IMG/VR virus record: IMGVR_UViG_3300036766_002289
Location: 124,001 to 188,000 of that record
Reading direction: 5' to 3' (one strand)
Length of the DNA stretch: 64,000 bases
Positions within the stretch are counted from its first letter, which is position 1, and every line of letters begins with the position of its first letter. Below, piece by piece: positions 10,714 through 62,419 of this stretch. The notes below the pieces were generated by a model. That model was not told the origin of the DNA, did no database searches, and saw only the letters and a list, made by a program, of their open reading frames with translations. The position numbers and the translations under genes are program-made.

Positions 10714-10749
10714 AATTTAAACTAGTAAGATATATAGAATAGGCTAAAT

Positions 10750-18185: not shown

Positions 18186-18258
18186 CTCAGTGTAGTCTCA
18201 TGGCGGGGCGCTATCCTCATAAGATAGTCCAAAGTGGGTTCGATTCCCACCACTGAGA
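18186..18258 (+). tRNA. tRNA-Met/Ile2 (anticodon CAT), non-initiator type
   Basis: Acceptor CTCAGTG/CACTGAG, anticodon arm CTATC-CTCATAA-GATAG, T arm GTGGG-TTCGATT-CCCAC; no encoded CCA. Confidence 0.9.
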
Positions 18259-27766: not shown

Positions 27767-28279
27767 ATGAACCCAAAAATTCACATATTGTGCGGGATGA
27801 TCGCGTCGGGGAAAAGTACGTATTGCCAGTCAGTAGCTAAGGCTGGCATAATATCAATGAATGATGATGCTGTCGTAAATCTATTACACGGCAATAATTA
27901 TTCACTTTATGACAAGGATTTGAAAATTCTTTACAAGTCCATTGAGACATCTATAGTTAGCCTAGTTTTGTGCCACGGCAAGATCGTGGCCATAGATCGT
28001 GGTGTGAACATCAGTACGTCAAGTAGGAAGCGATGGGTTGCACTTGCTCATAGTTATGACGTGCCATGTGAAGCTATCGTTTTCCCAAAAAGTTCTCCAG
28101 AGGTCCATGCACAACGCCGAGCAAGTCATGATGGTCGAGGCCATGATTATGATTACTGGTTGATGGTTGCAAAACATCATGATTCAATATATAATGAACC
28201 TTCCTTAGAAGAAGGATTTGACAATATTCATAAAATCAGTTATGAACAGATTTTAGCAGGGAGGGTTATAGATGGCTAG
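27767..28279 (+). CDS. AAA_33/polynucleotide kinase-like P-loop kinase
   Basis: GMIASGKST, IDRG N, R...RA. Confidence 0.75.
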   Translation: MNPKIHILCGMIASGKSTYCQSVAKAGIISMNDDAVVNLLHGNNYSLYDKDLKILYKSIETSIVSLVLCHGKIVAIDRGVNISTSSRKRWVALAHSYDVPCEAIVFPKSSPEVHAQRRASHDGRGHDYDYWLMVAKHHDSIYNEPSLEEGFDNIHKISYEQILAGRVIDG

Positions 28280-29132
28280 GTTATTAGATGGATTAGCTCT
28301 GGCAAAACAATATAAGACCAATCTTAGGGAAATGTTAGACCATCGCAGAACCAAACCAAGATTAGATGTGATCCTAGTTGGAGATAACCCAGCAAGTAAA
28401 ATTTATGTAAGTAAGAAGGTAGAAGCATGTAGAGAAGTTGGTATAGAATCTGTTACGCACAATTGTTCTTGTGATAATTTGTGGGACGCTTTCGGTCTAA
28501 CAAAACAATGTATAACTAACCTAAATAAAAATTCAAAAGTTAATGGCATACTCGTTCAATTGCCGCTGCCATTCCCAACTGAAGAAATTTTCGACTTGAT
28601 TGCCCCAGAAAAAGATGTCGATGTTTTTTCACCTGTGAATGTTGGTTTGTTAGTACAAAATAGACCAAGATTTCTGCCACCAACACCACTAGCAGTACAA
28701 AAATTAATATTAGATAATGGATTTATATTAAAAGGCAGGCATGTTGTAGTTATCAACCGCAGTAATGTGGTAGGATTGCCACTTTCTTCCATGCTTATCC
28801 AAGATAATGTTTTGGCTAATGCTACTGTTACCGTATGTCATGATAATACGCCATCCGAAATTCTAAAACAAATTTGTTTATCTGCTGATATAATAGTTGT
28901 CGCTGTAGGTATTCCTAATTTTCTAACATTAGACATGGTTAAAGAACATCAAGTAATCATAGATGTTGGAATTACTAGAATTGGTAAAAGGGTTGTTGGA
29001 GATGTACATCCAGCAGTCAAGGATAAAGTTCTTGCCATTTCACCTGTTCCAGGGGGCGTTGGGCCTTTAACAGTCGCCATGCTTTTATATAACACTGCCG
29101 ATGCTGCTCATTTTCAAAAGGAAGGCGAATAA
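28272..29132 (+). CDS. folD: Bifunctional methylene-THF dehydrogenase/cyclohydrolase
   Basis: VGDNPASKIYV, GILVQLPLP, KDVD, NRSNVVGLPL, PVPGGVGP. Confidence 0.95.
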   Translation: MARLLDGLALAKQYKTNLREMLDHRRTKPRLDVILVGDNPASKIYVSKKVEACREVGIESVTHNCSCDNLWDAFGLTKQCITNLNKNSKVNGILVQLPLPFPTEEIFDLIAPEKDVDVFSPVNVGLLVQNRPRFLPPTPLAVQKLILDNGFILKGRHVVVINRSNVVGLPLSSMLIQDNVLANATVTVCHDNTPSEILKQICLSADIIVVAVGIPNFLTLDMVKEHQVIIDVGITRIGKRVVGDVHPAVKDKVLAISPVPGGVGPLTVAMLLYNTADAAHFQKEGE

Positions 29133-30106
29133 TGAAAATCAGAATTTTTGGATTAAACGCTGATAAGATTTTTACTGAGTCTATATGTGACTACCTTGAT
29201 GCCGCCCCATCACCACATACTGAGAAGTATTTCCCTGATAGGGAGCCATATCTTAAATCTGATGTAAACGTGCGTGGAGATGATGTATATGTTGTCGCAT
29301 CTTTATACACAGACGAAAACGAAAGCGTAAATGACAAATTTGCAAAATTGCTAATATTCATTGGTTCTCTAAAAGATGCGTCTGCCGCCAGAATAAATTT
29401 AGTTGCACCATATTTGCCTTTTCAGCGGGCAGATAGGAAAACAGAAAGCCGTGCCCCGATTACAACCAAATATTTTGCAACAATGCTGGAAGCGGTAGGA
29501 ACAAATCGTGTTTTATCAATGGATGTTCATAATTTAAGTGTTTTCCAGAATTCTTTCAGGATTCCGACTGACAATCTTGAAGCTAGGAACTTGATGGTGG
29601 ATTATGTTACTTCAGAATTCAAAGACCAAGAGGCGGATATTTCTATTTTATCCCCAGATAGTGGCGGGGTTGGTAGGGCAGATCGTTTCAGAAAAAGACT
29701 TGCTATAAAAATGAACAGGAAAATTGATCTTTCCCATATGGGCAAGATTAGAGAAGGCACAATTGTACATGGAGACGAGATTACTGGTGATATAGAAGGC
29801 AAAGTTGTTTTGGTGGTCGATGATATGATTGCAAGTGGTTCTACGCTTGTAACTGCTGCTGGTACTGTGGAAAAACATGGCGGGAAGCTTTGGGCTGCTT
29901 GCGCCACCCATCCACTTTTCATAGGGAATGTGAATGACAACTTAATAAAAATAAATAGGATCGTTGTGACTGATACCATTATTCCTTCAAAAATCTCTGA
30001 CCAAGTAAAGAATAAATTGAAGGTTCTTTCAACCACTAAGTTGTTTGCTAGAGCAATCCGTAGGATTCATGACCAAGGTGGTTCAATTAGTGATCTTCTG
30101 AAATAG
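29132..30106 (+). CDS. prs: Ribose-phosphate pyrophosphokinase
   Basis: PYLPFQRADRK, MDVH, SPDSGG, VDDMIASGST. Confidence 0.92.
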   Translation: MKIRIFGLNADKIFTESICDYLDAAPSPHTEKYFPDREPYLKSDVNVRGDDVYVVASLYTDENESVNDKFAKLLIFIGSLKDASAARINLVAPYLPFQRADRKTESRAPITTKYFATMLEAVGTNRVLSMDVHNLSVFQNSFRIPTDNLEARNLMVDYVTSEFKDQEADISILSPDSGGVGRADRFRKRLAIKMNRKIDLSHMGKIREGTIVHGDEITGDIEGKVVLVVDDMIASGSTLVTAAGTVEKHGGKLWAACATHPLFIGNVNDNLIKINRIVVTDTIIPSKISDQVKNKLKVLSTTKLFARAIRRIHDQGGSISDLLK

Positions 30107-32915: not shown

Positions 32916-33788
32916 ATGAATTTTAAATTAACTACTTTTTTAGGCGTGCCACTTAGATTAAATCTATTTACTTTACTATTTGTAGCCTATTTGTATTTTT
33001 CTACGCCGAGTCAACAAGTCATAGATGGAATGGTAATTCCACATCTTGACATTTTGGCGGCTGGTGGCTTTTGCATAATGCTATTTTTTGTAATTTTACA
33101 TGAATATGGACATTGCTGGATGGCACAAAAAGTAGGGTGGAAAGTATATGATGTTACGATATATCCTATTGGTGGCATAGCTAGCATGGATTTTAAATAT
33201 AGCAACCCAATTCAAGAAATTCTTGTGATTGTTGCTGGACCTGCGGTCAACCTAATACTAGCTGGAATTTTTTCAGTGTGCCTAATTTCTTCTTATCTGA
33301 TAAACAAAGATGCGATTATACCCATAATTGTTTTCTTCATGCTTATGGTCATGAATTTGTTCATCATGGGATTTAATCTTTTGCCCATTTACCCTATGGA
33401 TGGTGGCAGGATTCTACGTGCATTACTTGCGTTTAAATTAGGACATAGAAAAGCAACTTGGTGGGCAGTTAAAACTGGACAATGTTTAGGTGTTGGTCTC
33501 ATTATTCTTGCGTTCTGTTTTAGTTATTATATTACTGGCATTATATTAGGATTTATTTTAATTCAATCGCAAGCTGAAATCTCTGATTCAAACATTATCG
33601 TTGGTTTACAAAATATTCGAATAAATACAGCAAAAATACTAGATAAACCCGAACTAGCAAAAGCCACTTTACCTGAATTAATCTCAGCCTTGGAAGCTGT
33701 GAAAGATGAAGAAACAAAAGAAAAAATACCACTTGATGAATTATTACCGCTACTCAAGGATTTGCAGGCAGACGGCATAACCATTTGA
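32916..33788 (+). CDS. Site-2 protease (M50)
   Basis: HEYGH, AGPAVN, NLLPIYPMDGGR; transmembrane segments. Confidence 0.92.
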   Translation: MNFKLTTFLGVPLRLNLFTLLFVAYLYFSTPSQQVIDGMVIPHLDILAAGGFCIMLFFVILHEYGHCWMAQKVGWKVYDVTIYPIGGIASMDFKYSNPIQEILVIVAGPAVNLILAGIFSVCLISSYLINKDAIIPIIVFFMLMVMNLFIMGFNLLPIYPMDGGRILRALLAFKLGHRKATWWAVKTGQCLGVGLIILAFCFSYYITGIILGFILIQSQAEISDSNIIVGLQNIRINTAKILDKPELAKATLPELISALEAVKDEETKEKIPLDELLPLLKDLQADGITI

Positions 33789-33812
33789 CAATTCAGGATT
33801 TCGTAGTATAGT
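33785..33812 (+). promoter_or_regulatory. Sigma70-type promoter for clpX
   Basis: TTGACA-N16-TATAGT. Confidence 0.7.
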
Positions 33813-33853
33813 AGACGGGGGAACGTTTAACAATTCAGGCATAAGGAGATTCA

Positions 33854-35158
33854 ATGGGGACGCGAGGAAAAAGGAAAATTAGTCGTTATTGTGATTTTTG
33901 TTCAAGGTCAGAAGATGAGGCAGGACGCTTGGTGGAAGGTCCAGGTGGTCCTAATCATGGGAAAATGGAAGGTGAATTTACATCCTACATCTGTGGGAAA
34001 TGTCTGGATGCCTGTACACGGCTTCTACAAACCAAACCTGTTATCCATACCCCTACCAAAATCCCTAATCCAAAAGAATTGGTAGCCAAACTCAATCAAC
34101 ATGTCATCGGCCAAGATCGTGCCAAGAAAGTCTTAGCCGTTGCTGTGTCTAACCACTATAAGCGACTGATCGACGAAGATTACGTAAGACAAACTAAGAA
34201 TTCTTTAGACCCCCTTGATTCCGTCGTTATTGATAAGAGCAATATCCTTATGCTCGGGCCTACAGGTTGTGGTAAAACCTTATTGTGCCAAACCTTAGCA
34301 ACCTTACTTGACGTTCCTTTTGCCATTGGTGACGCAACTACTTTGACGGAAGCAGGTTACGTTGGCGAAGACGTTGAAAACCTGTTGCTTCGTTTGATCC
34401 ATGCTGCCGATTTTGATATTGAGAAGGCTCAAACTGGCATCATTTATATTGATGAAATTGATAAGATCGGCAAGACTAGCCAGAATGTCTCTATTACGCG
34501 AGATGTTTCTGGTGAAGGTGTTCAGCAAGCCTTACTTAAGATGCTTGAAGGAACAATTGCCAACGTACCACCAACTGGTGGCCGTAAGCATCCTGAGCAA
34601 CAGTACTTGCAAATTGACACTACTAATATCTTATTCATCTGTGGTGGTGCGTTCGTTGGGCTGGAAGATATTGTGGGGCAAAGACTTGGGAAGAAAAGCA
34701 TTGGATTCGGTGTTACCCTAGAAGATCATGATTACGATGAGAAAAAGAAGCGTGATTGGTTACTGGCTCGCACAACTCCAGATGATTTGATTCATTTTGG
34801 GTTAATTCCTGAATTGGTAGGACGTATGCCAGTTATTGCCCCATTGAACGAATTGAATGAAGAGTCTTTGATTAAGGTTCTTACTGAGCCTAAGAGCGCA
34901 TTGCTCAAGCAATATGCTAAGTTGTTTCGCTATAACAACGCAAAGCTCGAATTCTCGGAAGGGGCAATTCGAGAAATTGCAAAAAAAGCTATCAAGCTTA
35001 ATACTGGTGCCAGAGCATTACGTGGGGTCGTTGAAGACTTAATGCTTGAATGGCAGTATGAATTGGAAGATGGTAAGGGGCAGACTTACATTGTTACTGA
35101 GGAAGTAGTCAAGGGCGAAAAACCTTTGGTGGCCGAAGCAACTAAGGAAGCTGCATAG
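33854..35158 (+). CDS. clpX: ATP-dependent Clp protease ATP-binding subunit
   Basis: C4 zinc finger, [26 protein letters not shown] loop. Confidence 0.96.
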
Positions 35159-35280
35159 CTTAGTTGTACCAGTGAATCTTGCATTGGCTTGGGTACAAAC
35201 GGTTTATGGTATAGGGCGAAAGCCTACCGTTCTAGTGGCTGTAAACGCTAGATATTGCACTTAGGCCAATGCAATTTTTA
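35155..35280 (+). ncRNA. Candidate structured leader RNA or attenuator (unknown class)
   Basis: 16-bp outer stem 35179-35194/35259-35274, GAAA-capped hairpin, second hairpin, U-tract; begins with the conserved box. Confidence 0.5.
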
Positions 35281-35294
35281 TTTTGGAGTTTACT

Positions 35295-35951
35295 ATGAAG
35301 ATTTGTGCTATTTCTGACCAGCACGGCAATTTGCCAAAAATTCCTTCTTGCGACCTTTTCCTTATCGCAGGCGATATTTGTCCAGCCACCAACCATAGTG
35401 TAGATTTTCAGGAATATTGGTTAGAAACCCAATTCAAGAATTGGTTAAAGGATGTTGATGCCAAGGAAAAGGTTTATATCTGCGGCAACCATGATTTCTT
35501 TTTCGAGAAAGCTTCAAAAAATAGGATTCAAAAAGCTTTAGAGAAGATTCCTGGTATTTACCTTCAAGACTCTAGCACAGAATTTGATGGCTTAAATATT
35601 TACGGAACACCTTGGCAACCATACTTTTTCGATTGGGCATTTAACCTTTATGAGAATGATTTAAAGAAAAAATGGGAATTAATTCCTAAGAACACTGATG
35701 TTCTTATTGTGCATGGTCCGCCTAGCACCTACGGTGATTATGCACCGCGTCCAAAAGGTAAAGGTGGGGAGCATACAGGTTCGCCTTCTCTACTGGGAAA
35801 AATTAAGGAAATTGAGCCGAAGCTCTGCGTTTTCGGTCACATCCACGAGGGACGTGGAGAGTGGGACTTAGACAAAACTAAGTTGGCCAATGTTACCATC
35901 TTAGATGGTAAGTATCAGATGGTTCATGAACCCTGGATTTACAACTTATAA
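35295..35951 (+). CDS. Metallophosphoesterase (MPPED-like)
   Basis: SDQHG, AGD, GNHD, HGPP, FGHIHE. Confidence 0.88.
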   Translation: MKICAISDQHGNLPKIPSCDLFLIAGDICPATNHSVDFQEYWLETQFKNWLKDVDAKEKVYICGNHDFFFEKASKNRIQKALEKIPGIYLQDSSTEFDGLNIYGTPWQPYFFDWAFNLYENDLKKKWELIPKNTDVLIVHGPPSTYGDYAPRPKGKGGEHTGSPSLLGKIKEIEPKLCVFGHIHEGRGEWDLDKTKLANVTILDGKYQMVHEPWIYNL

Positions 35952-35952
35952 T

Positions 35953-36264
35953 ATGCCACTTTTATTTGTCCATGAATGTCATAATACCATTCTCAAAGGA
36001 TCATTAGTCTCAAAAGCTAATACCTTTCCACGTTATAGAATGTATGATTATCATGGTAGTCCAGTTTTGAAAGAAGAGAAATCTGGCACTGCCATTTATG
36101 GGGAATTATGGTTTGTGCATAACTTTGATGACCTAGATCGGTTTGAGTCAAATATTTATAAGCGAGAGTTGATATTTTTAGAAAACCCCTGTGTGTTTGC
36201 TTATGCATATCTATTTAACCAGTCTGTTGAAGGGCTGTTAGAACATGGACACCAAATTAACTGA
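35953..36264 (+). CDS. Gamma-glutamylcyclotransferase-like protein (N-terminal YG motif absent)
   Basis: IYGELW, LDRFE, YKR, AYAY. Confidence 0.55.
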   Translation: MPLLFVHECHNTILKGSLVSKANTFPRYRMYDYHGSPVLKEEKSGTAIYGELWFVHNFDDLDRFESNIYKRELIFLENPCVFAYAYLFNQSVEGLLEHGHQIN

Positions 36265-37072
36265 AAGACAGTTGGAATATATTTGGCATATAAAGGATTT
36301 TGATTCCGCTCGTAAAACAAAAATTATAATGGGCGAGATGCCAGATTACGAACTCTATCTTGCTGCCAAGCAGAAACTTCATAACAGGAAAACTCCTTAT
36401 GAATATAGCTTCATGAATATAGAACCGCTATTATCGAGGGAACAAGAACAGCACTTATTCCGTCAGTACAATTACTTAAAGTATAAGTACAAGCAATCTA
36501 CTGAGGAAGAGATTAAAACGATCTTAGACAAGATTAAGGTTGTCAGAGACATTCTGACGTATGCTAATACTAGGTTGGTAATTACTGTTCTTAAAAAGCA
36601 AAAATATATAGATTTTGAAATTGCTTTGAGTGACGGAATCTATGGCCTCGTTGATGCAATTGACTTATTTGATTTCCGTAAAGGTATTAAATTTAGCACT
36701 TATGCGTATTGGGCCATTATGAGTAAAATAAGAACTTTTAGTCAAATAGAACTTGGCGAAAAGATTCACATCACTAGTAATCAGGACATAGCTTTAGAAG
36801 ATAGTCCAGATGAAGAGTGTAACGACGTTGAGCATAACGAAAATTGCAGGATTGTTGATGACATTCTTTCTACTCTTGCAGAGCGAGAGAAAATGATAAT
36901 TACTTATTATTATGGCCTGAAGAATGTACGAAGATTAGGACTGCGAGAAATTAGTAAACGATTCAAAATTAGCAAAGAAAGAGTGAGGCAGATTAAGGAC
37001 GCTGGACTCCATAAGCTCAAACTAACGGAGTTAAGAAAATATGAAGAAAAAAGGCTATCATTACATACTTGA
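36245..37072 (+). CDS. Sigma-70 family RNA polymerase sigma factor
   Basis: Region 2 GLVDAIDLFDFRKGIKFSTYAYWAI; region 4 ISKERVRQI. Confidence 0.92.
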   Translation: MDTKLTERQLEYIWHIKDFDSARKTKIIMGEMPDYELYLAAKQKLHNRKTPYEYSFMNIEPLLSREQEQHLFRQYNYLKYKYKQSTEEEIKTILDKIKVVRDILTYANTRLVITVLKKQKYIDFEIALSDGIYGLVDAIDLFDFRKGIKFSTYAYWAIMSKIRTFSQIELGEKIHITSNQDIALEDSPDEECNDVEHNENCRIVDDILSTLAEREKMIITYYYGLKNVRRLGLREISKRFKISKERVRQIKDAGLHKLKLTELRKYEEKRLSLHT

Positions 37073-37826
37073 AAGTCCGCAATATCAGAACTGTGAAGTG
37101 CTTAATCCAGATGGGCACCTCATGTTCCGTTGTTCATACAAAAAAGCCAATTGGTACCTCGAAAGAAATCTAGCCGTCAAGTTGAAGGATGAACCATTAG
37201 TTGTCAAATTGCTATTTACTCCTAATGGTAATGGGCATATTGGCGACCCATATCATTTACAAGTAATGCAGAATAAATGCGCAGTATGTGGGAATGCTGA
37301 GGATTTAACTAGGCATCATATAGTTCCCTATTGTTATAGGCGATACTTCCCAGATGAAATCAAGAATCATCGTGCTTATGATGTGATGGCAATGTGTACT
37401 AATTGTCACCATGCTTATGAAACTCAAGCGGAGTGTCTTAAAAAAGAAATTGGAGAAGAATATGGGATGCCAGTTGGCGGCATGGGTGCCAAATATGACA
37501 AGAAATCTGCTGGGGCTAAAACGGCGGCACATGCAATTTTACAACATGCATCAAAGATGCCCCCTGCAAGATTAGAGGAACTATATGAACGTGTGCGTGT
37601 TCATTTAGGAAGGGAGGCAACCATAGACGACTTACAACAATTAACTAATAAAAACTTACATGATTTTAGAGACTATGTACATCATGGCAAGTATGTAGTG
37701 AGCAAAATTCCCACCGATGGGATTGAAGAATTTATCAGAAGGTGGCGTAAGCATTTTTTGGAAACTATGCAACCAAGGTTCATGCCAAATAATTGGACGG
37801 TAGAGCGTTCAGTTTGGCATAAGTAG
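37041..37826 (+). CDS. HNH protein resembling the EXD2 C-terminal domain
   Basis: NCEVLNPDG..MFRCS.KKANWYL, CAVCG, RHHIVPYCYR, CTNCH. Confidence 0.65.
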   Translation: MKKKGYHYILESPQYQNCEVLNPDGHLMFRCSYKKANWYLERNLAVKLKDEPLVVKLLFTPNGNGHIGDPYHLQVMQNKCAVCGNAEDLTRHHIVPYCYRRYFPDEIKNHRAYDVMAMCTNCHHAYETQAECLKKEIGEEYGMPVGGMGAKYDKKSAGAKTAAHAILQHASKMPPARLEELYERVRVHLGREATIDDLQQLTNKNLHDFRDYVHHGKYVVSKIPTDGIEEFIRRWRKHFLETMQPRFMPNNWTVERSVWHK

Positions 37827-37831
37827 GCTAC

Positions 37832-37859
37832 TTTACATTGTCAGAATTCGTGGTATACT
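37832..37859 (+). promoter_or_regulatory. Sigma70-type promoter for the PARP operon
   Basis: TTTACA-N16-TATACT. Confidence 0.7.
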
Positions 37860-37951
37860 AAGGGAGATGCCAAATAATTTTAGGAATTAACTTAACTTAA
37901 ACTAAGAATTTTACGATTTAACTAATAACGATTATTAACAGGTGAAATACA

Positions 37952-39583
37952 ATGGCTAAATTAGAAAAGAACGAGTATCCCCGTAATTCTTCGGCAGATG
38001 ATTTTCAGTGTTTTGGACCGCCAGCAACAGAAGACGGTCAGTTTGACACATGTAAAATCGCTGACCTTGGCTGCTTTACCCAAGACGGTAAAGACAGTAA
38101 TAAGTATTACCATGCTGCTGTAGTTCAGCATAAAAAGACTAAAGCATGGTTTGTATATTTTCAATGGGGTCGCACAGGAGCAACCAATCCCACATTTCAA
38201 TTCGTTGAATGTGGTGGCGAATCCGATGCACAACGCACTTTTGCCGCACAACTCCATGATAAAAACGATAAACGTGGTCAATGGACTACTGTAGCTGGAA
38301 TCCGCACGCTTCAAGCCAAACCTAATAAGGATTGTTATCTAGTCCGTGCTATGGCAACTCGTTCAGTCGGCTTACCAGACGCTAAAACCATTAAGGTTAA
38401 TGAAGGTGCAAAAGTTACTGCCGCACCTACCAGCAAATCTGATTCAAAGATTGACAATCATACATTGCGTTTAATGCGGGACTTGAACGTGGCAACAGTG
38501 TCTTATACTCGTGGTGTTATGGCAGATGATTCTCTACCTACACAAAAGTCTATTGATGAAGCACGTCAGATTCTCCAAGAAGCGCAGAAGCGACTTGTGG
38601 TTGTTGGTAACAACGTAAATCATCAAGTAGCCGATAGTGATTTGAATCAACTCACAAGGCTGATGTATAGCCGTATTCCTAAGAAAAAGGCTTTACATTG
38701 TGCGGCTCATGAGTGGATTCTGAATAAGGACAATATTTTTTCTTGGACGGCGGACTTAGACGCATTCGAATCAGCCCTTTACGTAACTGACATTGAAGAT
38801 TCCAAGCAGACTGAAGATGTGTTTGCTGGTATGCCAATTACTATGGAATGGGTCGATCCCACTTCTATTGCTGGAAAATTTGCATATAATTGGTGGCCGA
38901 AAGCAACTGCAAATCGGCACGGTGGTCTTGGTAAGATGACAATTAAAAATCTTTGGCGTGTCCAACGCCGTGGCGATGGGCACGGTGGTCTTGGTAAGAT
39001 GACAATTAAAAATCTTTGGCGTGTCCAACGCCGTGGCGATGACACGAAGCTTTATAGCTGCCAAGATTCGGTATTAAAGGAAAAACCTTCTATTAAGGAA
39101 CGTCCTTTATTCCAACCCGAACGTTCCGATTTGCAGGACAATTCATTGATTAAGAAGTATACGGACACCAATACTTCTCTTCTATTTCATGGCACTCGCT
39201 CCGTTAATGTTCCTGGTATTCTTCGTGAAAACCTACGTCTTCCAAAGCAATTGGTTGGTGTTGTTATCACTGGTGCCATGTTCGGTCCTGGTATTTATTG
39301 GGCTGACGATTGGAAAAAGAGCGCTGGTTACACCTCATTAAGGGGTTCTTATTGGTCGTCTGGTGATGGAAGTGTCAAGAATCGTGACGCCTTCATGTTT
39401 GCTGGCGATGTTGTTCTTGGTAATCCTTATGTAGCACCATATTCTGGTGGTTATACGTCACCTCCTAAAGGTCATCATAGTGTCTATGGTAAGGCTGGAA
39501 AGAGTGGCGTTCAGAATAATGAATTCATTATTTACGATACTAAACAGTATCAGCTTCGTTATTTAATCGAATTTGCAGCATAA
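37952..39583 (+). CDS. WGR-domain poly(ADP-ribose) polymerase-like protein
   Basis: FQWGRTG; LFHGTR, GAMFGPGIYWA, GYTS, NNEFIIY (H-Y-E triad). Confidence 0.9.
   Translation: MAKLEKNEYPRNSSADDFQCFGPPATEDGQFDTCKIADLGCFTQDGKDSNKYYHAAVVQHKKTKAWFVYFQWGRTGATNPTFQFVECGGESDAQRTFAAQLHDKNDKRGQWTTVAGIRTLQAKPNKDCYLVRAMATRSVGLPDAKTIKVNEGAKVTAAPTSKSDSKIDNHTLRLMRDLNVATVSYTRGVMADDSLPTQKSIDEARQILQEAQKRLVVVGNNVNHQVADSDLNQLTRLMYSRIPKKKALHCAAHEWILNKDNIFSWTADLDAFESALYVTDIEDSKQTEDVFAGMPITMEWVDPTSIAGKFAYNWWPKATANRHGGLGKMTIKNLWRVQRRGDGHGGLGKMTIKNLWRVQRRGDDTKLYSCQDSVLKEKPSIKERPLFQPERSDLQDNSLIKKYTDTNTSLLFHGTRSVNVPGILRENLRLPKQLVGVVITGAMFGPGIYWADDWKKSAGYTSLRGSYWSSGDGSVKNRDAFMFAGDVVLGNPYVAPYSGGYTSPPKGHHSVYGKAGKSGVQNNEFIIYDTKQYQLRYLIEFAA
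38916..39041. repeat. Perfect 63-bp in-frame tandem duplication
   Basis: HGGLGKMTIKNLWRVQRRGD is encoded twice by identical DNA. Confidence 0.95.
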
Positions 39584-39593
39584 GGAGGAAATT

Positions 39594-40016
39594 ATGGGCA
39601 TTGATTATTCAGCATGTTCAATCATTGGTGTGATGATTCCAAATCCTTACGTCAAAGTGCAAGAGCGTGGTTGCCATCATGCCGAGAAGAAGGCTAAGTT
39701 TTGTCCTGAATGTGGCAAACCAATGTATGAGGAGCAAAAGAGGCAGCATCCTATCATTGAGGTACTGGATGATTATCGCAGTGAAAAGACGACAAAACTT
39801 AAATTAATTTGGTCCACCGATCAAGGTGAAGCCTATGTTGGCTTTTTCAAGGGTGAATCAGATGGTAGCAGAAGTGGTGGTGCCCGTGCTGGGCTTAAAG
39901 TTGATCTTCCTGATATCAATATTCAGGAATTGAAAAGTGCCTTACGAAAAGAACTGAAAGAACTTTATAACGAAAATAACTTTGGATTATGGACTGTACT
40001 TTACTGTAGTTACTAA
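39594..40016 (+). CDS. Hypothetical protein with CPECG Zn-ribbon
   Basis: AGGAGG ribosome-binding site; operonic with PARP. Confidence 0.65.
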   Translation: MGIDYSACSIIGVMIPNPYVKVQERGCHHAEKKAKFCPECGKPMYEEQKRQHPIIEVLDDYRSEKTTKLKLIWSTDQGEAYVGFFKGESDGSRSGGARAGLKVDLPDINIQELKSALRKELKELYNENNFGLWTVLYCSY

Positions 40017-40036
40017 ACAAAAAAGGAGAAAGAACT

Positions 40037-40696
40037 ATGTGTCAGAATGTTGCCTTGATTAATGATGTGGTTAACGAATTCGTTAACGATGGTAAGATGT
40101 TTACGGCGTACAACGTTACGACAGAAGTACGCAAACGAACCAAGGACCGTATTGCTCATGATGAAGTGAAGAGGGACGTTCACCGCATGTTCAACGATGG
40201 CGAGATGTTCAGCTACAACCGCAGTCTCGCCATGTTGCCAGGAATTAATCCGCAACCTTGGGTTTATCATCCATTGGCTGCTGATATCTCACTTTACAAT
40301 GGCCAGCCAACGGGTACTGTTACTTCAACTCCACCTTTCAGTGGTGTCCCTACTTTGATTCCGCATGTGCCTAATTCCATTAGCACGAATGCCGTGGCGA
40401 GTGACAATGTTTTCAAGTTGGATACGACTAACAGGCTTTGTGTGCCAGCAAAATTGATCCGTAATTTAGGACTTTCTGCTGGAGACCAAGCTGCCGTTAT
40501 GTATGATTCGGAATTGATCTTGACTAGTGAAGGTAAGGCTGCGACAATGACAAGCGCGGACTACATTACAAGCTATGTCGTAGACTCTTACGATAATGTC
40601 CGTCTCACGCTTACAGCTTTGCAAAAGGGTCGTCTCAATGGCACTGAATTCGAAATCGAAGGAGACTTGGAAAAAGTCACCATCCGACCTCACTAA
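40037..40696 (+). CDS. Hypothetical protein with C-terminal AbrB-like region
   Basis: KLDTTNRLCVPAKLIRNLGLSAGD. Confidence 0.55.
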   Translation: MCQNVALINDVVNEFVNDGKMFTAYNVTTEVRKRTKDRIAHDEVKRDVHRMFNDGEMFSYNRSLAMLPGINPQPWVYHPLAADISLYNGQPTGTVTSTPPFSGVPTLIPHVPNSISTNAVASDNVFKLDTTNRLCVPAKLIRNLGLSAGDQAAVMYDSELILTSEGKAATMTSADYITSYVVDSYDNVRLTLTALQKGRLNGTEFEIEGDLEKVTIRPH

Positions 40697-40712
40697 TCCT
40701 AGTCACCTAATT

Positions 40713-41222
40713 ATGTCAGGTAAATATGACCAGGCGATTGTCTTACTTCGTAAGATGTTGAGACAATCGCCTGATTGTCATTGGGGATGGTTTGAGTTAT
40801 CATCCGCATACTACGAAAAAAAGAAATATATATTGGCCCTAAGATATGCTCAGAAGTCTTTAGCCATAGAACCAAATTGTCCATTAGCATTATGGCATTG
40901 TGCTGGCGCATTATCCCACACCGCTAGTATTCTGGGCATTGAAGAGAATTTTCAGAAGTCTTATGACATTTATAAGAAACTTTTGAAAAAAGGCGTAGCT
41001 GGTTTAGATAAAATGGATTGTTGTAATGAAGGCCATAATGACAACTTAGGACTTATCAATGATTGTCGTCTTGCCGTAGGCATGTGTGCTTATGGCATGA
41101 ATAAATACAAAGAAGCTAAGCGATGGACAAACTTGTTCATCAGCAAGCATGACAAAAACTCCATTTATACTAAAAAATTTGGCATTAGGGTTTTAAAGAG
41201 TATAGAAAAATATGAACACTAA
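40713..41222 (+). CDS. TPR-repeat protein
   Basis: GKYDQAIVLLRK...LSSAYYEKKKY..AL.Y..K.L...P. Confidence 0.75.
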   Translation: MSGKYDQAIVLLRKMLRQSPDCHWGWFELSSAYYEKKKYILALRYAQKSLAIEPNCPLALWHCAGALSHTASILGIEENFQKSYDIYKKLLKKGVAGLDKMDCCNEGHNDNLGLINDCRLAVGMCAYGMNKYKEAKRWTNLFISKHDKNSIYTKKFGIRVLKSIEKYEH

Positions 41223-41344
41223 AATTGCAAAAGATTGTGGCCATGCCACTGACCGCATTTGGACAGTAGACGACAAAGAACTATGTTCAGAATGTATGCT
41301 TAGAATTATGAATAAAGATACTTACGACGAAGTATTCCAGGGAG

Positions 41345-41587
41345 ATGAAGATGAAGAAGAACGAGAAGCTTACTGATTTACTTAAATGGCATCATAGTGC
41401 TATTAACACGTTAGATAAACTAATTAAAGATATACGGCACGCTATTGCCGAAGAAGCTAAACGGCGGTGCCATGAGAATAATCAAGCATTGATAGATTCT
41501 GAAACCGTATGTCAAGCTATGAAAAAGTATGTTAAACCAGAATTTTATGATCCTTACGCCGATTCGTTATCTTCGCGTGGCGACTAG
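41345..41587 (+). CDS. Hypothetical protein
   Basis: ORF track. Confidence 0.45.
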   Translation: MKMKKNEKLTDLLKWHHSAINTLDKLIKDIRHAIAEEAKRRCHENNQALIDSETVCQAMKKYVKPEFYDPYADSLSSRGD

Positions 41588-41595
41588 ATAAATGC

Positions 41596-42240
41596 ATGAA
41601 GGATTTGGCGATTTACACCGCAATTACTGGTGGCTATGATAGCGTAAAAGAACATGTAAACTTGCCAGGGGACTTGTTCATATTTACTGATAGGGAAGTG
41701 CGTAGTGATAAGTATTATGTGTTGCCATGTTTGAATTTGTTCAAAAGTAATAATAGAAATGCTAAAATACATAAAGTGCTTGCGCATGTGTATTTTCCAG
41801 AATATGAATATACTTTATGGATTGATGGGAACGTAAGAATTAAAAAAGATATATCTTCTTTGATAAATCGCTTGAAAAACCATGATATAAGTTTATTTAA
41901 ACACTCTGAAAGAACTTGTGCATACAAAGAGGCAAAGGTTTGTAGTCATTATATTTTAGACAAACCACCTATAATTTCGAAGCAAGTAGAAAGATACAAA
42001 AAGGAACAATTTCCAGAACAATATGGTTTGTGGTGTGGTGGAATTATTTTCCGAAGTAATCGGATGCATAATCTAAATGAATTTTGGTGGAAAGAAATCT
42101 GTGCTGGCTCTAAAAGAGACCAGATAAGCCTGCCATATGCTCTATGGAAAAATAACATTACGGCGAACAATATAGATGGCAACATGATAGATGGATGTTT
42201 CGAACTACACTCCCATTTAAGATTGCCGACTATAAACTAG
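41596..42240 (+). CDS. DUF616/TOD1-like glycosyltransferase domain protein
   Basis: YTAITGGYD, WIDGN, RDQISL. Confidence 0.8.
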   Translation: MKDLAIYTAITGGYDSVKEHVNLPGDLFIFTDREVRSDKYYVLPCLNLFKSNNRNAKIHKVLAHVYFPEYEYTLWIDGNVRIKKDISSLINRLKNHDISLFKHSERTCAYKEAKVCSHYILDKPPIISKQVERYKKEQFPEQYGLWCGGIIFRSNRMHNLNEFWWKEICAGSKRDQISLPYALWKNNITANNIDGNMIDGCFELHSHLRLPTIN

Positions 42241-42247
42241 ATAGTGT

Positions 42248-42745
42248 ATGAGTTTCAAAGTATGGTTAGAATCCAGTATAAATGATTTATACGATAGTGC
42301 TGTGGATGCCTATCCTAAAACAAAGTTTAGACAACATGCAGTTGACACTATTAAGATCGTAGAATTGAGTATTATCCCCTTCAAAGGTATGAAGACCATA
42401 TTCTTCAAGGGTTTAGCTCAAAACGAAGGCAACGAATACAATACGGTGATTGTCTTCAAAGAAGTGGATTATTCAAAAGGCATAAAGATAACTGCTAGTG
42501 ATGGACTAGATTATGAACTAAAGCCTTTATCAGTTAATAATGATGTTTTTGTTAGGTGCGATTGTCCTGATTTCAGTTGGCGATTCAATTATTACAATTA
42601 TCTGGACCACTCACTATATGGAAAGAAAAGAAAGAAATACGAAAGTGGTGAGTATCCTGCAAATCCAAAAGAGTCGCCTGGTCTGTGTAAACACCTAATC
42701 TCTATGACACGGGCATTAAGAGATTCGGGCATTTTGAAAGACTGA
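42248..42745 (+). CDS. SWIM zinc-finger protein
   Basis: VRCDCPDF...LCKHL; MSFKVWLE N-terminus. Confidence 0.7.
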   Translation: MSFKVWLESSINDLYDSAVDAYPKTKFRQHAVDTIKIVELSIIPFKGMKTIFFKGLAQNEGNEYNTVIVFKEVDYSKGIKITASDGLDYELKPLSVNNDVFVRCDCPDFSWRFNYYNYLDHSLYGKKRKKYESGEYPANPKESPGLCKHLISMTRALRDSGILKD

Positions 42746-42746
42746 A

Positions 42747-43730
42747 ATGATTACCAGAGATAAAGTTCGTGGTATGTTCTTAGGCGTTGCCATTGGGGAT
42801 TCTTTTGGAATGCCTTTCGAAAGCAAGAAGTTTGAAGATGTTAAAGCCCTAAAAAGAACTAATACTTATCGAAGTAGTAATCGTGGTAAGAAGGGCAGTT
42901 GGACTGACGATACACAATTAACGATTGCTACAGCATTGGCCATGCTTGAATCAGGTGATTTCAACATGGACAACATTGCTGCTTGGCATGTCAAAGCTTA
43001 TAAAGCTTCGACTTCAGGGTGGGGAGGCACGACTAGGGATGCTGTTAAAAAACTCTCTGAAGGAACACATTGGTCAGAATCTGGTAAATTTGTAGGACAA
43101 AATAATAGGGGATTTGGCAATGGTGTAGTGATGAAAGCAGCACCATTAGCTGCATACTTTGCTCTTGCCAATGACGACTTGGATTATGACAATTCCATTT
43201 GTGATTTTACAATGATGACCCACCAAACAAGTGTGGCTGTTAGTTCTTGTTATGCCCATGTAGAAGCTCTAATGTATTGTTTGCGAGAAACAATTGATAG
43301 CTTCCGCAGTAGAGAATTTATTGAGGCGATAGTGGAGTCCAGTACGATTGGTGCCGCTTATTTCCCAGAAACTTTCAAGGATGATATAACCACTAAGTTA
43401 GAATCTATAAGAGAAATATACAGTATTCCAGATTTACTTTTTGATGACGGTTATTTAGTCAGCGAATTTGGCGGCGGTTCTTGTTATGTTTATGATTCTT
43501 TACCATTTTCTTATGCATTTTTCCTACGTGGTCCATTCAGTATTGAGAGCATGTATGATGTTGCATATGCTGGCGGTGACTCTGATACAAATGCCTCCAT
43601 CGTTGCAAGCATGATCGGCGCAATCTGTGGAACGAAAGTTTTCCCAAAAACTCTGGTAGAAGGATTATCTGCAAAAAATCAAATTTTGAGAATAGCCGAC
43701 CTGTTTTATGAAAAGTTCTTTACAAATTGA
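42747..43730 (+). CDS. ADP-ribosylglycohydrolase (ARH/DraG family)
   Basis: AIGDSFG, WTDDTQL, GNGVVMK, GGDSDT. Confidence 0.9.
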   Translation: MITRDKVRGMFLGVAIGDSFGMPFESKKFEDVKALKRTNTYRSSNRGKKGSWTDDTQLTIATALAMLESGDFNMDNIAAWHVKAYKASTSGWGGTTRDAVKKLSEGTHWSESGKFVGQNNRGFGNGVVMKAAPLAAYFALANDDLDYDNSICDFTMMTHQTSVAVSSCYAHVEALMYCLRETIDSFRSREFIEAIVESSTIGAAYFPETFKDDITTKLESIREIYSIPDLLFDDGYLVSEFGGGSCYVYDSLPFSYAFFLRGPFSIESMYDVAYAGGDSDTNASIVASMIGAICGTKVFPKTLVEGLSAKNQILRIADLFYEKFFTN

Positions 43731-46512: not shown

Positions 46513-46585
46513 GCTCTTGTAGCTCAATGGGAGAGCGACGAACTCTAAATTCGATTGGTTGAGGGTTCGAATCCCTCCAAGAGCG
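46513..46585 (+). tRNA. Amber suppressor tRNA (anticodon CTA)
   Basis: Acceptor GCTCTTG/CAAGAGC+G, D arm GCTC-AATGGGA-GAGC, loop CT-CTA-AA (46543-46549), T arm GAGGG-TTCGAAT-CCCTC. Confidence 0.88.
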
Positions 46586-57285: not shown

Positions 57286-58227
57286 ATGAGCGACATGTTA
57301 TGCACAATATGTAAAAAAGTAAAAGTTAGGCACTTATATTGTGAAAAGTGCCGTAAGGATTATTGGAAGACCTACTTAAAAGTCTACAGAAAAAACAATA
57401 AAGCAAAAATTTCGAACCTCAATGAAGAATGGAGAAAAAGCAATAAGGAATATTGTGCCGAGTATAAAGTCCTGTATTATAGGTCGTTAAAAGGAAGATT
57501 AGTTGAGCTTCTACGCTCGGCAAAAAGGAGGGCGAAGAAAAGGAGTTTAAACTTTAACTTAACATTAGAGTTTTTAGAAGCGTTGTGGGCAGTACAAAAT
57601 GATCGATGTGCAGTAACTGGTTTGATTTTAAATATTCCGCAAACAACCAATAATGGAAAAGCACAGCCGTTTTCTCCTTCTATTGATCGCATTGACCCAG
57701 CCAAAGGATATACGGAGGGCAATGTTAGAATAGTATGCTATGTGGTTAATTGTGCGTTGCATTTTGGCATAAATGTATTTAGTGTAATATCAAGGGCATA
57801 CTTGAATGGCATAATACCATCTGAAATGCCCTGTAGAAATGACGATGCGGCATTGCCCAAGGATAAAAATTATCGAGAAGGCCCAAAAGGTGTAATCAGC
57901 GCACTCTACAACCAATGCAGGAAGAATGCTAAAGCAAAAAACATAGAGTTTAAAATTACGAAAAAATTTATAGCTAAACTATTTGTTAAACAAAAAAATA
58001 AATGTATTTTAACTAGCATTACTTTCAGCAATCTACTGGTAGGGAATAAACAAAGTAATCCTTTTAGAGCGTCTATTGACAGAGTTAACCCCAAGATTGG
58101 ATATGTGCCTAAAAATATTAGATTAGTCATCGTAGCAATGAATTATGCCATGAATGAATTCGGGGAAAACATTTTCAAGGAGATTTGTGAGGCATATGAG
58201 AATAATTTACTCAAACCATCCAGTTGA
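57286..58227 (+). CDS. Protein with two tandem His-Me finger endonuclease domains
   Basis: PSIDRIDPAKGY..GNVR and ASIDRVNPKIGY..KNIR. Confidence 0.8.
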   Translation: MSDMLCTICKKVKVRHLYCEKCRKDYWKTYLKVYRKNNKAKISNLNEEWRKSNKEYCAEYKVLYYRSLKGRLVELLRSAKRRAKKRSLNFNLTLEFLEALWAVQNDRCAVTGLILNIPQTTNNGKAQPFSPSIDRIDPAKGYTEGNVRIVCYVVNCALHFGINVFSVISRAYLNGIIPSEMPCRNDDAALPKDKNYREGPKGVISALYNQCRKNAKAKNIEFKITKKFIAKLFVKQKNKCILTSITFSNLLVGNKQSNPFRASIDRVNPKIGYVPKNIRLVIVAMNYAMNEFGENIFKEICEAYENNLLKPSS

Positions 58228-58699
58228 AATCACACAAAATTCATTGTTTTTATGTGGGCCTTCGCCCCGTTCCAAGGACGTTAAATCTTGGCGTCCAGAA
58301 GCATTAAAAATATTGGGTACACTGGAATATAGTGGCACAATTTATGTCCCTGAATGGGATTCTAATGTGCCAAAAATCAATTATATTGAACAGGTTGAAT
58401 GGGAATATGCACATCTTGAAAACTGTGGATTAGTAGTTTTTTGGGTTCCGAGAAAACTCGACACAATGCCAGCCTTTACCACTAATGTAGAATTTGGTTC
58501 CTATGTTAGGTCGGGCCGTATCCTCTATGGTCGGCCTAAAAGAGCAGAAAAGTGCGAATACTTAGATTGGCTCTATACCAAAGTCACTACTCGAATCCCG
58601 CATGAAAATTTGCTTGAGCTTCTTAAAGAAGCAATAAGTCGTGTGGCTCAAATACAAAATCCAAATCATTGGGTATGTAGATCAGGATATAGTTTATGA
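58196..58699 (+). CDS. Nucleoside 2-deoxyribosyltransferase-like protein
   Basis: LFLCGP, SWR, QVEWE, VFW, TTNVEFG. Confidence 0.75.
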   Translation: MRIIYSNHPVEITQNSLFLCGPSPRSKDVKSWRPEALKILGTLEYSGTIYVPEWDSNVPKINYIEQVEWEYAHLENCGLVVFWVPRKLDTMPAFTTNVEFGSYVRSGRILYGRPKRAEKCEYLDWLYTKVTTRIPHENLLELLKEAISRVAQIQNPNHWVCRSGYSL

Positions 58700-60379: not shown

Positions 60380-60973
60380 ATGGCAAAGTTTGTGTGTAGT
60401 GACTGGCACTGCGGCGAAGACAGATTCGAACTTATGGGTCGGCCATTCACTTCTATTGAAGGAATGATTGACACCCTGATTAAGAATCACAATTCTCTAG
60501 TAATGCCAGATGATGAAGTCTATATGGTTGGTGATGTTTGTTATCAAAAACGTCCAGAATATCTTAGTCGAGTCGCAGATTTCAATGGTAAAAAGACTCT
60601 AATTCGTGGGAATCATGATAGGGTTCTTTCCGATACTGATTTCCTAATGTATTTTGACAAAGTAATTGCTGATGGTGCTGGTATTGATCTAGACATTGAA
60701 GGCATTCCTTGTTATCTTACACACTATCCCACTCGTGGGCGGCAAGATAGGTTCAACCTAGTCGGACATGTGCATGGAGCCTGGCGTTACCAACTTAATT
60801 CTTTTAACATTGGGGTTGATGCGAATCATTTTTATCCCGTAAACCTAAAAACAATTCCGTTTCACTTTAAAGCAATTTGTGAGTATTACGATCAGGATGT
60901 ATGGGTAGGATACGACCCTATAAATGAAATTTATAAAGGTGTTCGGGGCAAAAAAGGAAGTTATTTTACGTAA
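60380..60973 (+). CDS. Calcineurin-like metallophosphoesterase
   Basis: SDWHCG, VGDV, RGNHD, THYP, GHVHG. Confidence 0.88.
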   Translation: MAKFVCSDWHCGEDRFELMGRPFTSIEGMIDTLIKNHNSLVMPDDEVYMVGDVCYQKRPEYLSRVADFNGKKTLIRGNHDRVLSDTDFLMYFDKVIADGAGIDLDIEGIPCYLTHYPTRGRQDRFNLVGHVHGAWRYQLNSFNIGVDANHFYPVNLKTIPFHFKAICEYYDQDVWVGYDPINEIYKGVRGKKGSYFT

Positions 60974-61824: not shown

Positions 61825-61966
61825 AATATTATCTATGTTGGTGTGCAAAATTTTATTGAATAATTCTGACTATTTTGCTAACATGCAAATGAGAAAATAA
61901 GATGAGACCATGTGTGACTCCACAAGCAATTATTGAACACAGAAGTAAACCAAGGGGATTTCCAGT

Positions 61967-62164: not shown

Positions 62165-62419
62165 ATGGCTGGATATCATCTGAATGACATTCCCCGTGGC
62201 GAATACGGTGAGCTTTCTAAGGTAATTGAAGAAGCTTTAGAGCTAAAAGACGCTATGGAACAAGGGCAGAAATTGATGTGTCTTATTGAGCTTGCCGATA
62301 TACTCGGGGCCATCGAAGGATATTTAGAAAAATATTATGAAGGCAAGATTACTGTTGATGATCTTTTTAACATGTCCTATGCTACCAAAAGAGCTTTTGA
62401 GTCAGGATATAGAAAATGA
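62165..62419 (+). CDS. MazG-like NTP pyrophosphohydrolase
   Basis: KVIEEALEL...ELAD. Confidence 0.55.
   Translation: MAGYHLNDIPRGEYGELSKVIEEALELKDAMEQGQKLMCLIELADILGAIEGYLEKYYEGKITVDDLFNMSYATKRAFESGYRK

Follow-up and report, generated by a model that had tools for sequence, protein, structure and literature searches.

A huge-phage locus encoding a PARP1-like ADP-ribosyltransferase, a winged-helix/MraZ-like protein and an ADP-ribosylhydrolase, with relatives in type XIII retron operons of Planctomycetota

What use might a huge phage have for an enzyme built like eukaryotic PARP1, and which of the surrounding genes belong with it? The question is raised by a locus in a stretch of 64,000 nucleotides (hereafter, the window) corresponding to bases 124001-188000 of the 390,039-bp virus record IMGVR_UViG_3300036766_002289 from IMG/VR. 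An earlier note, made from the letters of this DNA, had proposed a promoter-led operon for a PARP1-like enzyme at 37832-41222, with two ADP-ribosylhydrolases (ARHs) elsewhere. A computational analysis of the locus is reported here. On sequence comparison and analogy with characterized enzymes, the evidence leans toward a reversible ADP-ribosylation module of a huge phage, with a PARP writer, a putative DNA-binding-type partner and an ARH as eraser.

The central gene (37952-39583, + strand) encodes a poly(ADP-ribose) polymerase-like protein of 543 amino acids (aa), which is predicted to have the architecture of PARP1 and PARP2: a WGR domain, a helical domain (HD) and an ADP-ribosyltransferase (ART) domain with an H-Y-E active site. 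The assignment draws on Pfam, sequence matches to the PDB, an AlphaFold2 (AF2) model, Foldseek and VIA-align. Pfam matched PARP (PF00644) at 6.8e-22 and WGR at 1.9e-8; the WGR core covers aa 42-107 (38075-38272, +), with the WGR motif itself at aa 72-74. The ART catalytic domain (38822-39583, +), defined by Pfam, PDB alignment, conservation and superposition, contains H413, Y449, K456, Y460 and E524. PDB sequence matches to PARP1 and PARP2 align H862, Y896 and E988 of PARP1 with H413, Y449 and E524, and K456 falls at the position of PARP1 K903. These five residues and R74 are invariant in all 57 family members compared, W72 and G73 are kept in 56 of the 57, and each of the 24 viral copies retains the catalytic H, Y, E, K and Y. 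An R-S-E active site of the T4 Alt/Mod type was not found in the protein. The Pfam PARP and WGR matches, the alignment with PARP1 and the conservation thus bear out what the earlier note had recognized here, a PARP1-like WGR and H-Y-E enzyme in a phage.

The AF2 model, built on 43 homologues, has a mean predicted local distance difference test score (pLDDT) of 80.8. Its top Foldseek matches are the WGR-HD-catalytic chains of PARP1 bound to a DNA double-strand break, and PARP2, with E-values down to 3.5e-21. VIA-align placed residues 163-543 on residues 662-1007 of PARP1, covering HD and ART, with a root-mean-square deviation of 3.2-3.4 A over about 300 residues at 25% identity; Z was 27-28 against the catalytic fragments of both PARP1 and PARP2. 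The HD, equivalent to the autoinhibitory HD of PARP1, is placed at about aa 163-290 (38438-38821, +) from the model helices at 169-276 and from the alignment starting at PARP1 residue 662. Its fold superposes on that of PARP1, yet the PARP_reg sequence signature is lacking. The WGR-HD-ART architecture is assigned because the model superposes on both HD and ART of PARP1, although PARP_reg scores nothing.

Domain order, H-Y-E triad, second tyrosine and K903-equivalent lysine are shared with eukaryotic PARP1, PARP2 and PARP3. The phage protein differs from these enzymes in having no zinc fingers or BRCT domain, in an identity of about 25% in the catalytic part, in its unscored PARP_reg region and in an asparagine (N522) in place of Y986 of PARP1. 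Features that only its own family has are the first 35 residues and a beta-rich extension that follows the WGR domain.

The genes accompanying the PARP were compared at 67 loci, selected from 843 or more homologues and analyzed by naive open reading frame (ORF) calls and BLAST at 1e-5. Of these loci 23 are viral (4 from assemblies, 19 from IMG/VR), and 44 come from a collection of bacterial and archaeal genomes, which was scanned with one genome per prokaryotic species. In the window, ten genes on one strand run from the PARP to an ARH with spacings of -32 to +20 nt, flanked by gaps of 125 nt upstream of the PARP and 57 nt downstream of the ARH. Because of this spacing the ARH, referred to as ARH1 (42747-43730, +), is assigned to the PARP gene string, and the operon end formerly set at 41222 is too short. 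ARH1 belongs to the ARH/DraG family (Pfam PF03747, 1.6e-47) and is the putative eraser of the module. It is full length, with metal-site motifs PFE at residue 23, TDDT at 53 and DSDT at 278, and its PDB relatives are Lmo0067, MJ1187, DraG and ARH3. Homologues of 36-69% identity follow the PARP in 11 of the 23 viral loci, at distances of up to 10 kb, and also in L041, a genome-collection locus that is probably a phage contig. This agrees with the idea that writer and eraser are encoded together.

A second ARH (ARH2; 62416-63309, +; Pfam 4e-75) is of another subfamily. It too is full length (PVE at 23, TDDT at 52, DADT at 253), and its closest structures are a Thermus ARH (2cwc, 2.6e-64) and the Tri1-type hydrolase 6dre (1.1e-57). 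No linkage of ARH2 to the PARP module was seen in the window; its neighbors are a LAGLIDADG-like gene at 60961-61848 (-) and genes without identified function. By Pfam score and by their PFE/PVE, TDDT and DxDT motifs both hydrolases are real, as had been proposed. Their placement away from the operon holds for ARH2 and fails for ARH1, which sits in the same tight string as the PARP. A macrodomain gene (Pfam Macro, 1.4e-17) at 206499-206828 of the record, outside the window, is a potential third eraser or reader of ADP-ribose in the same phage.

Between writer and eraser, a gene at 40037-40696 (+) encodes a 219-aa protein (p219) which, judged by gene neighborhood, is a conserved partner of the PARP, a point that the earlier note had missed. 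Its AF2 model (pLDDT 86) and Foldseek searches divide it into a winged-helix domain (aa 1-88), a disordered linker and an MraZ-like double AbrB/SpoVT domain (aa 123-219). The C-terminal domain matched the MraZ structures 9sz7, 1n0e and 9qlg at 8.8e-4 to 8e-3 with TM-scores of 0.5, and the N-terminal domain matched winged-helix structures with probabilities above 0.9 and E-values of about 0.2. In Pfam, MraZ appeared only at 0.069 and AbrB was not called. A sequence search yielded 15 close homologues, of which several lie on contigs of about 590 kb; one, P0133, carries PF04014, and another is named a PrlF-type regulator or antitoxin by the Joint Genome Institute. The earlier description of this gene as AbrB-like consequently stands at the level of fold and through the homologue with PF04014, and is without backing from Pfam. 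A stand-alone homologue follows the PARP at a distance of no more than 10 kb in 13 of the 23 viral loci and stands beside the PARP in eight genome-collection loci, namely L041 and seven of Planctomycetota (L023, L027, L033, L034, L035, L046 and L052).

The PARP has 843 homologues in a word-based protein search. The best 120 of them are 58-100% identical to it and about 520-550 aa long, and many lie on contigs of 540-670 kb. Carriers of the family are huge phages of 340-670 kb and, among cells at 50-64% identity, nearly only Planctomycetota. In the closest relative, L055 (PARP 88% identical), the PARP is followed contiguously by counterparts of the window's 147-aa protein (p147), p219, the TPR protein, the 165-aa protein (p165) and the ARH. 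At the DNA level the phage collection returned a single weak match, LR756511, an uncultured phage of 595 kb, with 77% identity over 12% of the query.

One relative's 572-kb record has direct terminal repeats, which indicates that the relatives are complete huge phages. The window's own record is rated 98% complete by CheckV and is classed as a provirus by IMG/VR. This label is doubtful because the same PARP is also recorded on a 590,099-bp contig and because the relatives are phage contigs of 340-670 kb, one with terminal repeats; the 390-kb record is probably a trimmed huge-phage contig and the label probably a trimming artefact. About 200 kb of the contig is missing from the record, and the absences of PARG, reverse transcriptase (RT) and Nampt from it are provisional. 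On this provisional footing, no RVT_1 match and no microbial PARG was found in the 390-kb record; neither of the PARG families PF05028 and PF10021, one of which marks bacterial PARP-PARG operons, was detected. Eukaryote-type PARG also gave no match in this record, although the control search was likewise empty. RT_XIII, the retron RT of clade 10, had no match in any of the 23 viral loci. Two other PARP-bearing records do contain PARG. In L009, a microbial PARG and an RNA ligase (269-964 and 5559-6206) lie within 8 kb upstream of the PARP with a Nudix gene nearby; the second record is G306. In L008, a single small ORF separates the PARP from an ATP-dependent DNA ligase gene (9989-11122) on its downstream side.

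By sequence, the closest cellular kin of the module are the tail genes of type XIII retrons of Planctomycetota, a relationship that had been missed. The 44 PARP loci of the genome collection, 50-64% identical to the window's PARP, belong almost entirely to Planctomycetota (Gemmataceae, Pirellulaceae and Planctomycetaceae) and include the isolate Neorhodopirellula pilleata Pla100 (L030) and two complete chromosomes. The exceptions are a 546-kb contig binned as Bacteriovoracaceae, with phage-like neighbors, and two contigs of about 107 kb binned as Woesearchaeota. In L003 and L013 the three genes upstream of the PARP were called HEAT-ARM_XIII (2e-56), SWIM_XIII (4e-154) and RT_XIII (6e-155) by PADLOC, which identifies this trio as a type XIII retron. 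BLAST located RT_XIII no more than 10 kb from the PARP in 26 of the 44 loci, and in about 22 of these directly upstream on the same strand. The typical order is ARH (about 400 aa), HEAT/ARM protein (about 600), SWIM protein (about 590), RT (about 645) and PARP, with genes overlapping or nearly touching; the ARH precedes the HEAT gene in 8 of the 12 loci with enough upstream sequence (Pfam ARH 4.5e-37 for L016). A PemK toxin gene stands beside the PARP-bearing retron operon in bacteria. Two complete genomes have no RT_XIII anywhere near the PARP. Only 2 of 301 sampled species of Planctomycetota, the centre genome included, carry the PARP, so it is sporadic in this phylum and not a trait of the lineage. 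In five metagenome-assembled genomes of Planctomycetota (L036, L046, L047, L051 and L052) the PARP is split over several frames, as is the RT in L051, reflecting either gene decay or frameshift errors of assembly.

The partner protein provides a second link to these retrons. The first 88 or so residues of p219 are homologous to the N-terminal extension of the Planctomycetota RTs, with 35% identity and an E-value of 1e-11 in pairwise comparison, and an hhalign probability of 99.75 (E 2e-27) that is confident over the N-terminal domain only. The idea that the MraZ-like domain is also present in the RT extension was rejected, as only those first residues align confidently. Where the RT is short (465-518 aa) and has no N-terminal extension, a stand-alone two-domain homologue of 230-258 aa is found beside the PARP instead (L033, L034 and L035). 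In L023, L027, L046 and L052 the PARP likewise adjoins a stand-alone homologue, and the flanking sequence available contains no RT. In phages and bacteria alike, the PARP and the winged-helix domain are thus companions, either as neighbors or through fusion of the domain to the adjoining RT. The WGR domain of the PARP was also compared with the 'WGR-like' N-terminus of the HEAT/ARM_XIII protein, and no signal was obtained with shallow profiles.

Quick maximum-likelihood trees were made from 57 PARPs (24 viral, 20 RT-linked and 13 other). All 30 from Planctomycetota group in a single clade (SH-aLRT 99), which is sister to the window's viral clade (96-98). The other viral clades branch deeper, whether the tree is rooted at its midpoint or with an outgroup. 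The outgroup of the second tree was a canonical paralogue with WGR, PARP_reg and PARP domains from L035, about 34% identical in the catalytic part and on a very long branch. In L035 (9713-13756) two PARPs flank a p219-like gene, one of the window's family and the other this canonical protein of 479 aa. Within the bacterial clade of the outgroup-rooted tree the earliest branches are copies without an RT link, and the RT-linked copies occupy derived positions. The trees favor transfer from phage to Planctomycetota and then recruitment into a retron. This direction is favored rather than demonstrated, given the great length of the outgroup branch and the quick way in which the trees were built.

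How might such a module work? By analogy with PARP1-3 and with two bacterial PARPs assayed in vitro, the WGR domain would bind a nucleic-acid end or junction, and ligand binding would release the autoinhibitory HD. NAD+ could then serve the H-Y-E ART domain as donor of ADP-ribose, which would be attached singly or in chains to the enzyme itself, to partner proteins or to the ends of DNA. The DNA-binding-type partner p219 may act as a targeting factor, a substrate or a regulator, and ARH1, encoded at the end of the string, would take the mark off. PARG genes in some relatives hint at ADP-ribose chains. The retron context suggests DNA with unusual ends as the class of ligand, and in that setting the WGR domain would most obviously bind reverse-transcribed DNA. 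The DNA ligase and the RNA ligase in relatives fit a phage function centered on ends or nicks. From its distribution, the combination of PARP and winged-helix domain is most likely a portable, nucleic-acid-triggered ADP-ribosylation unit of phage origin.

A wider scheme, which is put forward tentatively, would account for both settings. A switch born in phages would couple recognition of a nucleic-acid structure to ADP-ribosylation; Planctomycetota would have captured it and wired it to type XIII retrons through the fusion of winged-helix domain and RT. There, multicopy single-stranded DNA (msDNA), or its loss or alteration during infection, would control the PARP as effector. In the phage, the same switch would serve to mark or guard the ends of the phage's own DNA, or intermediates of its replication, with ARH1 as the means of resetting the switch. 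If true, retrons would gain their first ADP-ribosylating effector, and the DNA-break signaling of PARP1 would have a counterpart in prokaryotes and viruses.

Several observations weigh against a reversible module of this kind. Pfam PARP_reg (PF02877) gives no score on the HD. The module is not universal, since neither p219 nor an ARH could be detected at up to 10 kb from the PARP in 10 of the 23 viral relatives. A prediction of the complex between PARP and p219 scored 0.00, which is informative neither way on binding. The root of the tree rests on a midpoint or on one very long outgroup branch. The promoter with which the operon had been said to begin is a sigma-70-type consensus match (TTTACA, 16 nt, TATACT with TG; 37832-37859, +). 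It scored best in the scan (10 of 12) and is the sole match to its pattern in the window; promoter-like sites in the region number 34 against 28 +/- 5 in shuffled sequence, so they show no excess, and this one is not conserved in the two closest relatives, L055 and L004. A promoter at 37832 is accordingly not upheld. With no conserved promoter and with nearly all genes of the region on one strand, the limits of the transcription unit are likewise inferred. Finally, the PARP gene of the window contains a perfect in-frame tandem duplication of 2 x 63 bp (38916-39041, +; TRF, 100% identity, score 252), passed over in the earlier note. It adds 21 aa (aa 322-342 = 343-363) and doubles a loop and the first core strand of the ART domain. 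The duplication is either a recent event or an assembly artefact; lying at the start of the ART core, it may impair this particular enzyme.

For the purposes suggested in the earlier note, namely host take-over, DNA-damage signaling or counter-defense against DarT-like or NAD-based systems, the analysis yielded no direct evidence. Other readings of the locus have to be set against the reversible module. In the first, the phage practices counter-defense by mimicry: its PARP and winged-helix protein would act as competitors of a host defense built from a type XIII retron and a PARP, or would titrate the ligand of that defense, and ARH1, with ARH2 and the macrodomain protein, would strip ADP-ribose placed by the host from phage proteins or DNA. 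That the nearest cellular relatives are retron-linked PARPs, whose RTs share the winged-helix domain, speaks for this, as do a phage record with two ARHs and a Macro gene and no RT, and the rarity of the PARP among sampled Planctomycetota, which resembles that of accessory defense genes. A decoy, however, has no need of intact catalytic residues, and these are kept in every viral copy. The bacterial clade is moreover nested inside viral diversity, which argues against a recent acquisition of the phage genes from a host retron, and the G+C content of the phage (about 37% in the window) lends no support to a planctomycete host. Mimicry is regarded as unlikely.

The next alternative is take-over of the host through modification of its transcription or translation machinery, as by T4 Alt, ModA and ModB, with the WGR domain and p219 merely tethering the enzyme to DNA. 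A role of this sort is proposed for phage PARPs in jumbo-phage surveys (PMC7824862). The module also lies directly downstream of a phage sigma-like factor in 8 of the 23 viral relatives (L004, L008, L010, L055, L056, L057, L059 and L061); in the window this conserved upstream neighbor is a sigma-70-like factor at 36245-37072 (+; Pfam Sigma70_r4 6.8e-12, r2 9.6e-5). Take-over leaves unexplained, however, why bacteria wire the same PARP and winged-helix domain to an RT, and why some relatives have genes for DNA ligase, RNA ligase or PARG alongside the PARP. It is considered a rather poor prospect.

Over-activated PARP1 drains NAD+, and a PARP triggered by foreign or broken DNA, for example that of a superinfecting phage, could in principle serve as an exclusion device that depletes NAD+ and aborts a competitor, with ARH1 recycling or limiting self-damage. 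The embedding of the bacterial gene in a retron operon beside a PemK toxin gene would suit an abortive-type effector, and retrons are described as anti-phage defense elements (PMC13712802). Aborting its own cell would nevertheless gain a lytic phage little, and no Nampt salvage gene that could protect the phage was found in the 390-kb record, trimmed as it is; no NAD+ salvage pathway is evident beside the PARP. This reading is very doubtful. It is highly improbable that the 63-bp duplication marks a decaying or mis-assembled gene rather than a working enzyme: the perfect repeat is unique to 1 of the 57 family members (it is missing from all 12 aligned relatives) and doubles a core beta-strand whose first copy is modeled as a disordered loop and whose second forms the strand, but it is in frame, the model retains a full ART core, and the rest of the reading frame and all neighboring genes are intact.

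Further genes of the string lie between the PARP and ARH1. The gene at 39594-40016 (+) encodes a lineage-specific protein of 140 aa, or p147 if translation starts at the TTG at 39573. The zinc ribbon previously assigned to it (39573/39594-40016) scores below threshold: Zn_Ribbon_1 has an E-value of 0.0067 and 16.6 bits against a cut-off of 25, and the protein has one CxxC pair and a C-H-H stretch only, a possible C-H-H...CxxC zinc knuckle. Among the loci examined only L055 has a homologue (70% identity), and Atlas returned only phage clusters of hypothetical proteins. The TPR protein (40596/40713-41222, +), whose start is probably the ATG at 40713, had been correctly identified (TPR_2 4.9e-12; 45.4 bits against a cut-off of 27). 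Its homologues are limited to the closest relatives, L055, L004 and L008. PADLOC gave only weak PDC-M16B matches for it, and no defense-system model matched the PARP, p147 or p219. Between the TPR gene and p165, the window has two small ORFs of 54 and 80 aa and a TOD1/MUCI70 glycosyltransferase-like gene (41212-42240, +; Pfam TOD1_MUCI70 6e-16), whereas in L055 the TPR gene and p165 are adjacent. The phage protein p165 (42248-42745, +), encoded 1 nt upstream of ARH1, has a SWIM-type CxC...CxH motif (CDC at residue 104, CKH at 147; Pfam SWIM 0.081), and its Atlas neighbors are phage clusters in which 12-23% of members have SWIM. As counterparts of SWIM_XIII and HEAT/ARM_XIII, p165 and the TPR protein were rejected, with hhalign probabilities below 1% and no BLAST matches.

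Just before the ribosome-binding site of the PARP gene, comparison with relatives revealed a conserved leader element of 17 nt, GATTTAACTAAyAACGA (37915-37931, +). It is near-identical in L055, partly retained in L004 and recurs nowhere else in the window; it could be an operator, perhaps for the MraZ-like protein. The gene directly upstream of the PARP (37041-37826, +) encodes a 261-aa protein that is weakly called HNH-like (HNH_2 0.0037, DUF968 0.0057, PHROG HNH 2.9e-4). Homologues of 36-67% identity lie upstream of the PARP in seven viral loci and L041, and none was found in the retron loci. Together with the sigma-70-like factor it closes a block at 32916-37826 that is conserved upstream of the PARP in relatives and also contains an M50 peptidase, a ClpX-like ATPase and a metallophosphatase. 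From about 32.9 kb to about 51.2 kb nearly all genes of the window are on the + strand.

Elsewhere in the window, a C-methyltransferase ORF at 2371-4659 (-) is split by an intein with a LAGLIDADG homing-endonuclease domain (Methyltransf_14 1.4e-45, Intein_splicing 5.7e-16). A nucleotide-metabolism cluster at 27767-30106 consists of an AAA_33 kinase-like gene, FolD (tetrahydrofolate dehydrogenase/cyclohydrolase) and a phosphoribosyl pyrophosphate synthetase. Two tRNA genes were found at 18186-18258 and 46513-46585, an HNH endonuclease gene at 55273-56328 and a nucleoside 2-deoxyribosyltransferase-like gene at 58154-58699.

As an enzyme class the phage PARP is not new; phage PARP-like ARTs and bacterial WGR-helical-PARP enzymes were already known. 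PARPs of Herpetosiphon aurantiacus and Clostridioides difficile CD160 are active in vitro, in a DNA-dependent manner in the case of Herpetosiphon, and their products are reversed by PARG (PMC8120803). As described there, these enzymes have a WGR domain, a poorly scoring HD and a PARP domain, and the writer is encoded together with a hydrolase, as in the window. Unlike these PARP-PARG pairs, the phage string has an ARH as its eraser, in a 390-kb record where no PARG was found. The literature on phages records PARP-like ARTs since 2005, in Aeromonas phage Aeh1 (PMC1266365), and jumbo-phage PARPs or 'PARTs' in surveys of 2021-2022, which proposed that they poly-ADP-ribosylate host or phage targets (PMC7824862, PMC9503650). 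These are phage-encoded H-Y-E ARTs of the PARP clade, as here, although the Aeh1 protein is fused to a coat-like domain, unlike the PARP of the window (PMC1266365). The statement in the earlier note that most phage ARTs are of the R-S-E type is dated, as the commonest viral ARTs listed in the 2022 survey include PARP-like families and others of the H-Y-[EDQ] type (PMC9503650).

T4 Alt, ModA and ModB are likewise phage-encoded ADP-ribosyltransferases used in infection. They are R-S-E mono-ARTs with no WGR domain or HD and no dedicated eraser in the operon (PMC8120803), whereas the phage PARP has the H-Y-E triad. In DraT/DraG and Tre1/Tri1 an ART is co-encoded with an ARH-family hydrolase, as in the window; their writers, however, are arginine-specific R-S-E ARTs and not PARPs. 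ARH2 is close to the Tri1-type hydrolase and the Thermus ARH, and ARH1 is more distant, with DraG at about 5e-9.

In the type XIII retrons of Planctomycetota, a PARP homologue (50-64% identical) follows the RT, the N-terminal extension of the RT is homologous to the N-terminal domain of p219, and an ARH opens many of the operons. The phage differs in that its record has no RT and in that its SWIM-like p165 and its TPR protein show no profile similarity to SWIM_XIII or HEAT/ARM_XIII. In their published description, type XIII retrons comprise an RT, a DEDE/winged-helix/SWIM protein and a HEAT/ARM protein termed 'WGR-like', with no mention of PARP or ADP-ribosylation (PMC7736814); nor are these mentioned in a 2026 survey that counts 26 such retrons in Planctomycetota (PMC13712802). 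Full-text literature searches returned nothing relevant on a retron paired with WGR or PARP. The huge-phage WGR-HD-ART family, its winged-helix/MraZ-like partner, the ARH at the string's end and the link to retrons are absent from the available portions of PMC1266365, PMC7824862 and PMC9503650. In the literature searched, neither the phage module, composed of PARP, winged-helix/MraZ-like protein and ARH, nor its relationship to the PARPs linked to retrons appears to have been described.

Signaling of the PARP1 type, with the sensing of a DNA end followed by the addition and later removal of ADP-ribose, is central in eukaryotes, and its prokaryotic and viral relatives are almost unstudied. The locus offers a compact and widely conserved phage version with an identifiable partner and eraser, which is open to direct expression and assay. 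Should it prove to be merely another phage ART, it would still belong, as a well-delimited case, to a large family whose main carriers are huge phages. For type XIII retrons, the link to the PARP names a candidate ligand, reverse-transcribed DNA, and a candidate effector mechanism, and the trees suggest that a defense-type bacterial operon drew its effector from phages.

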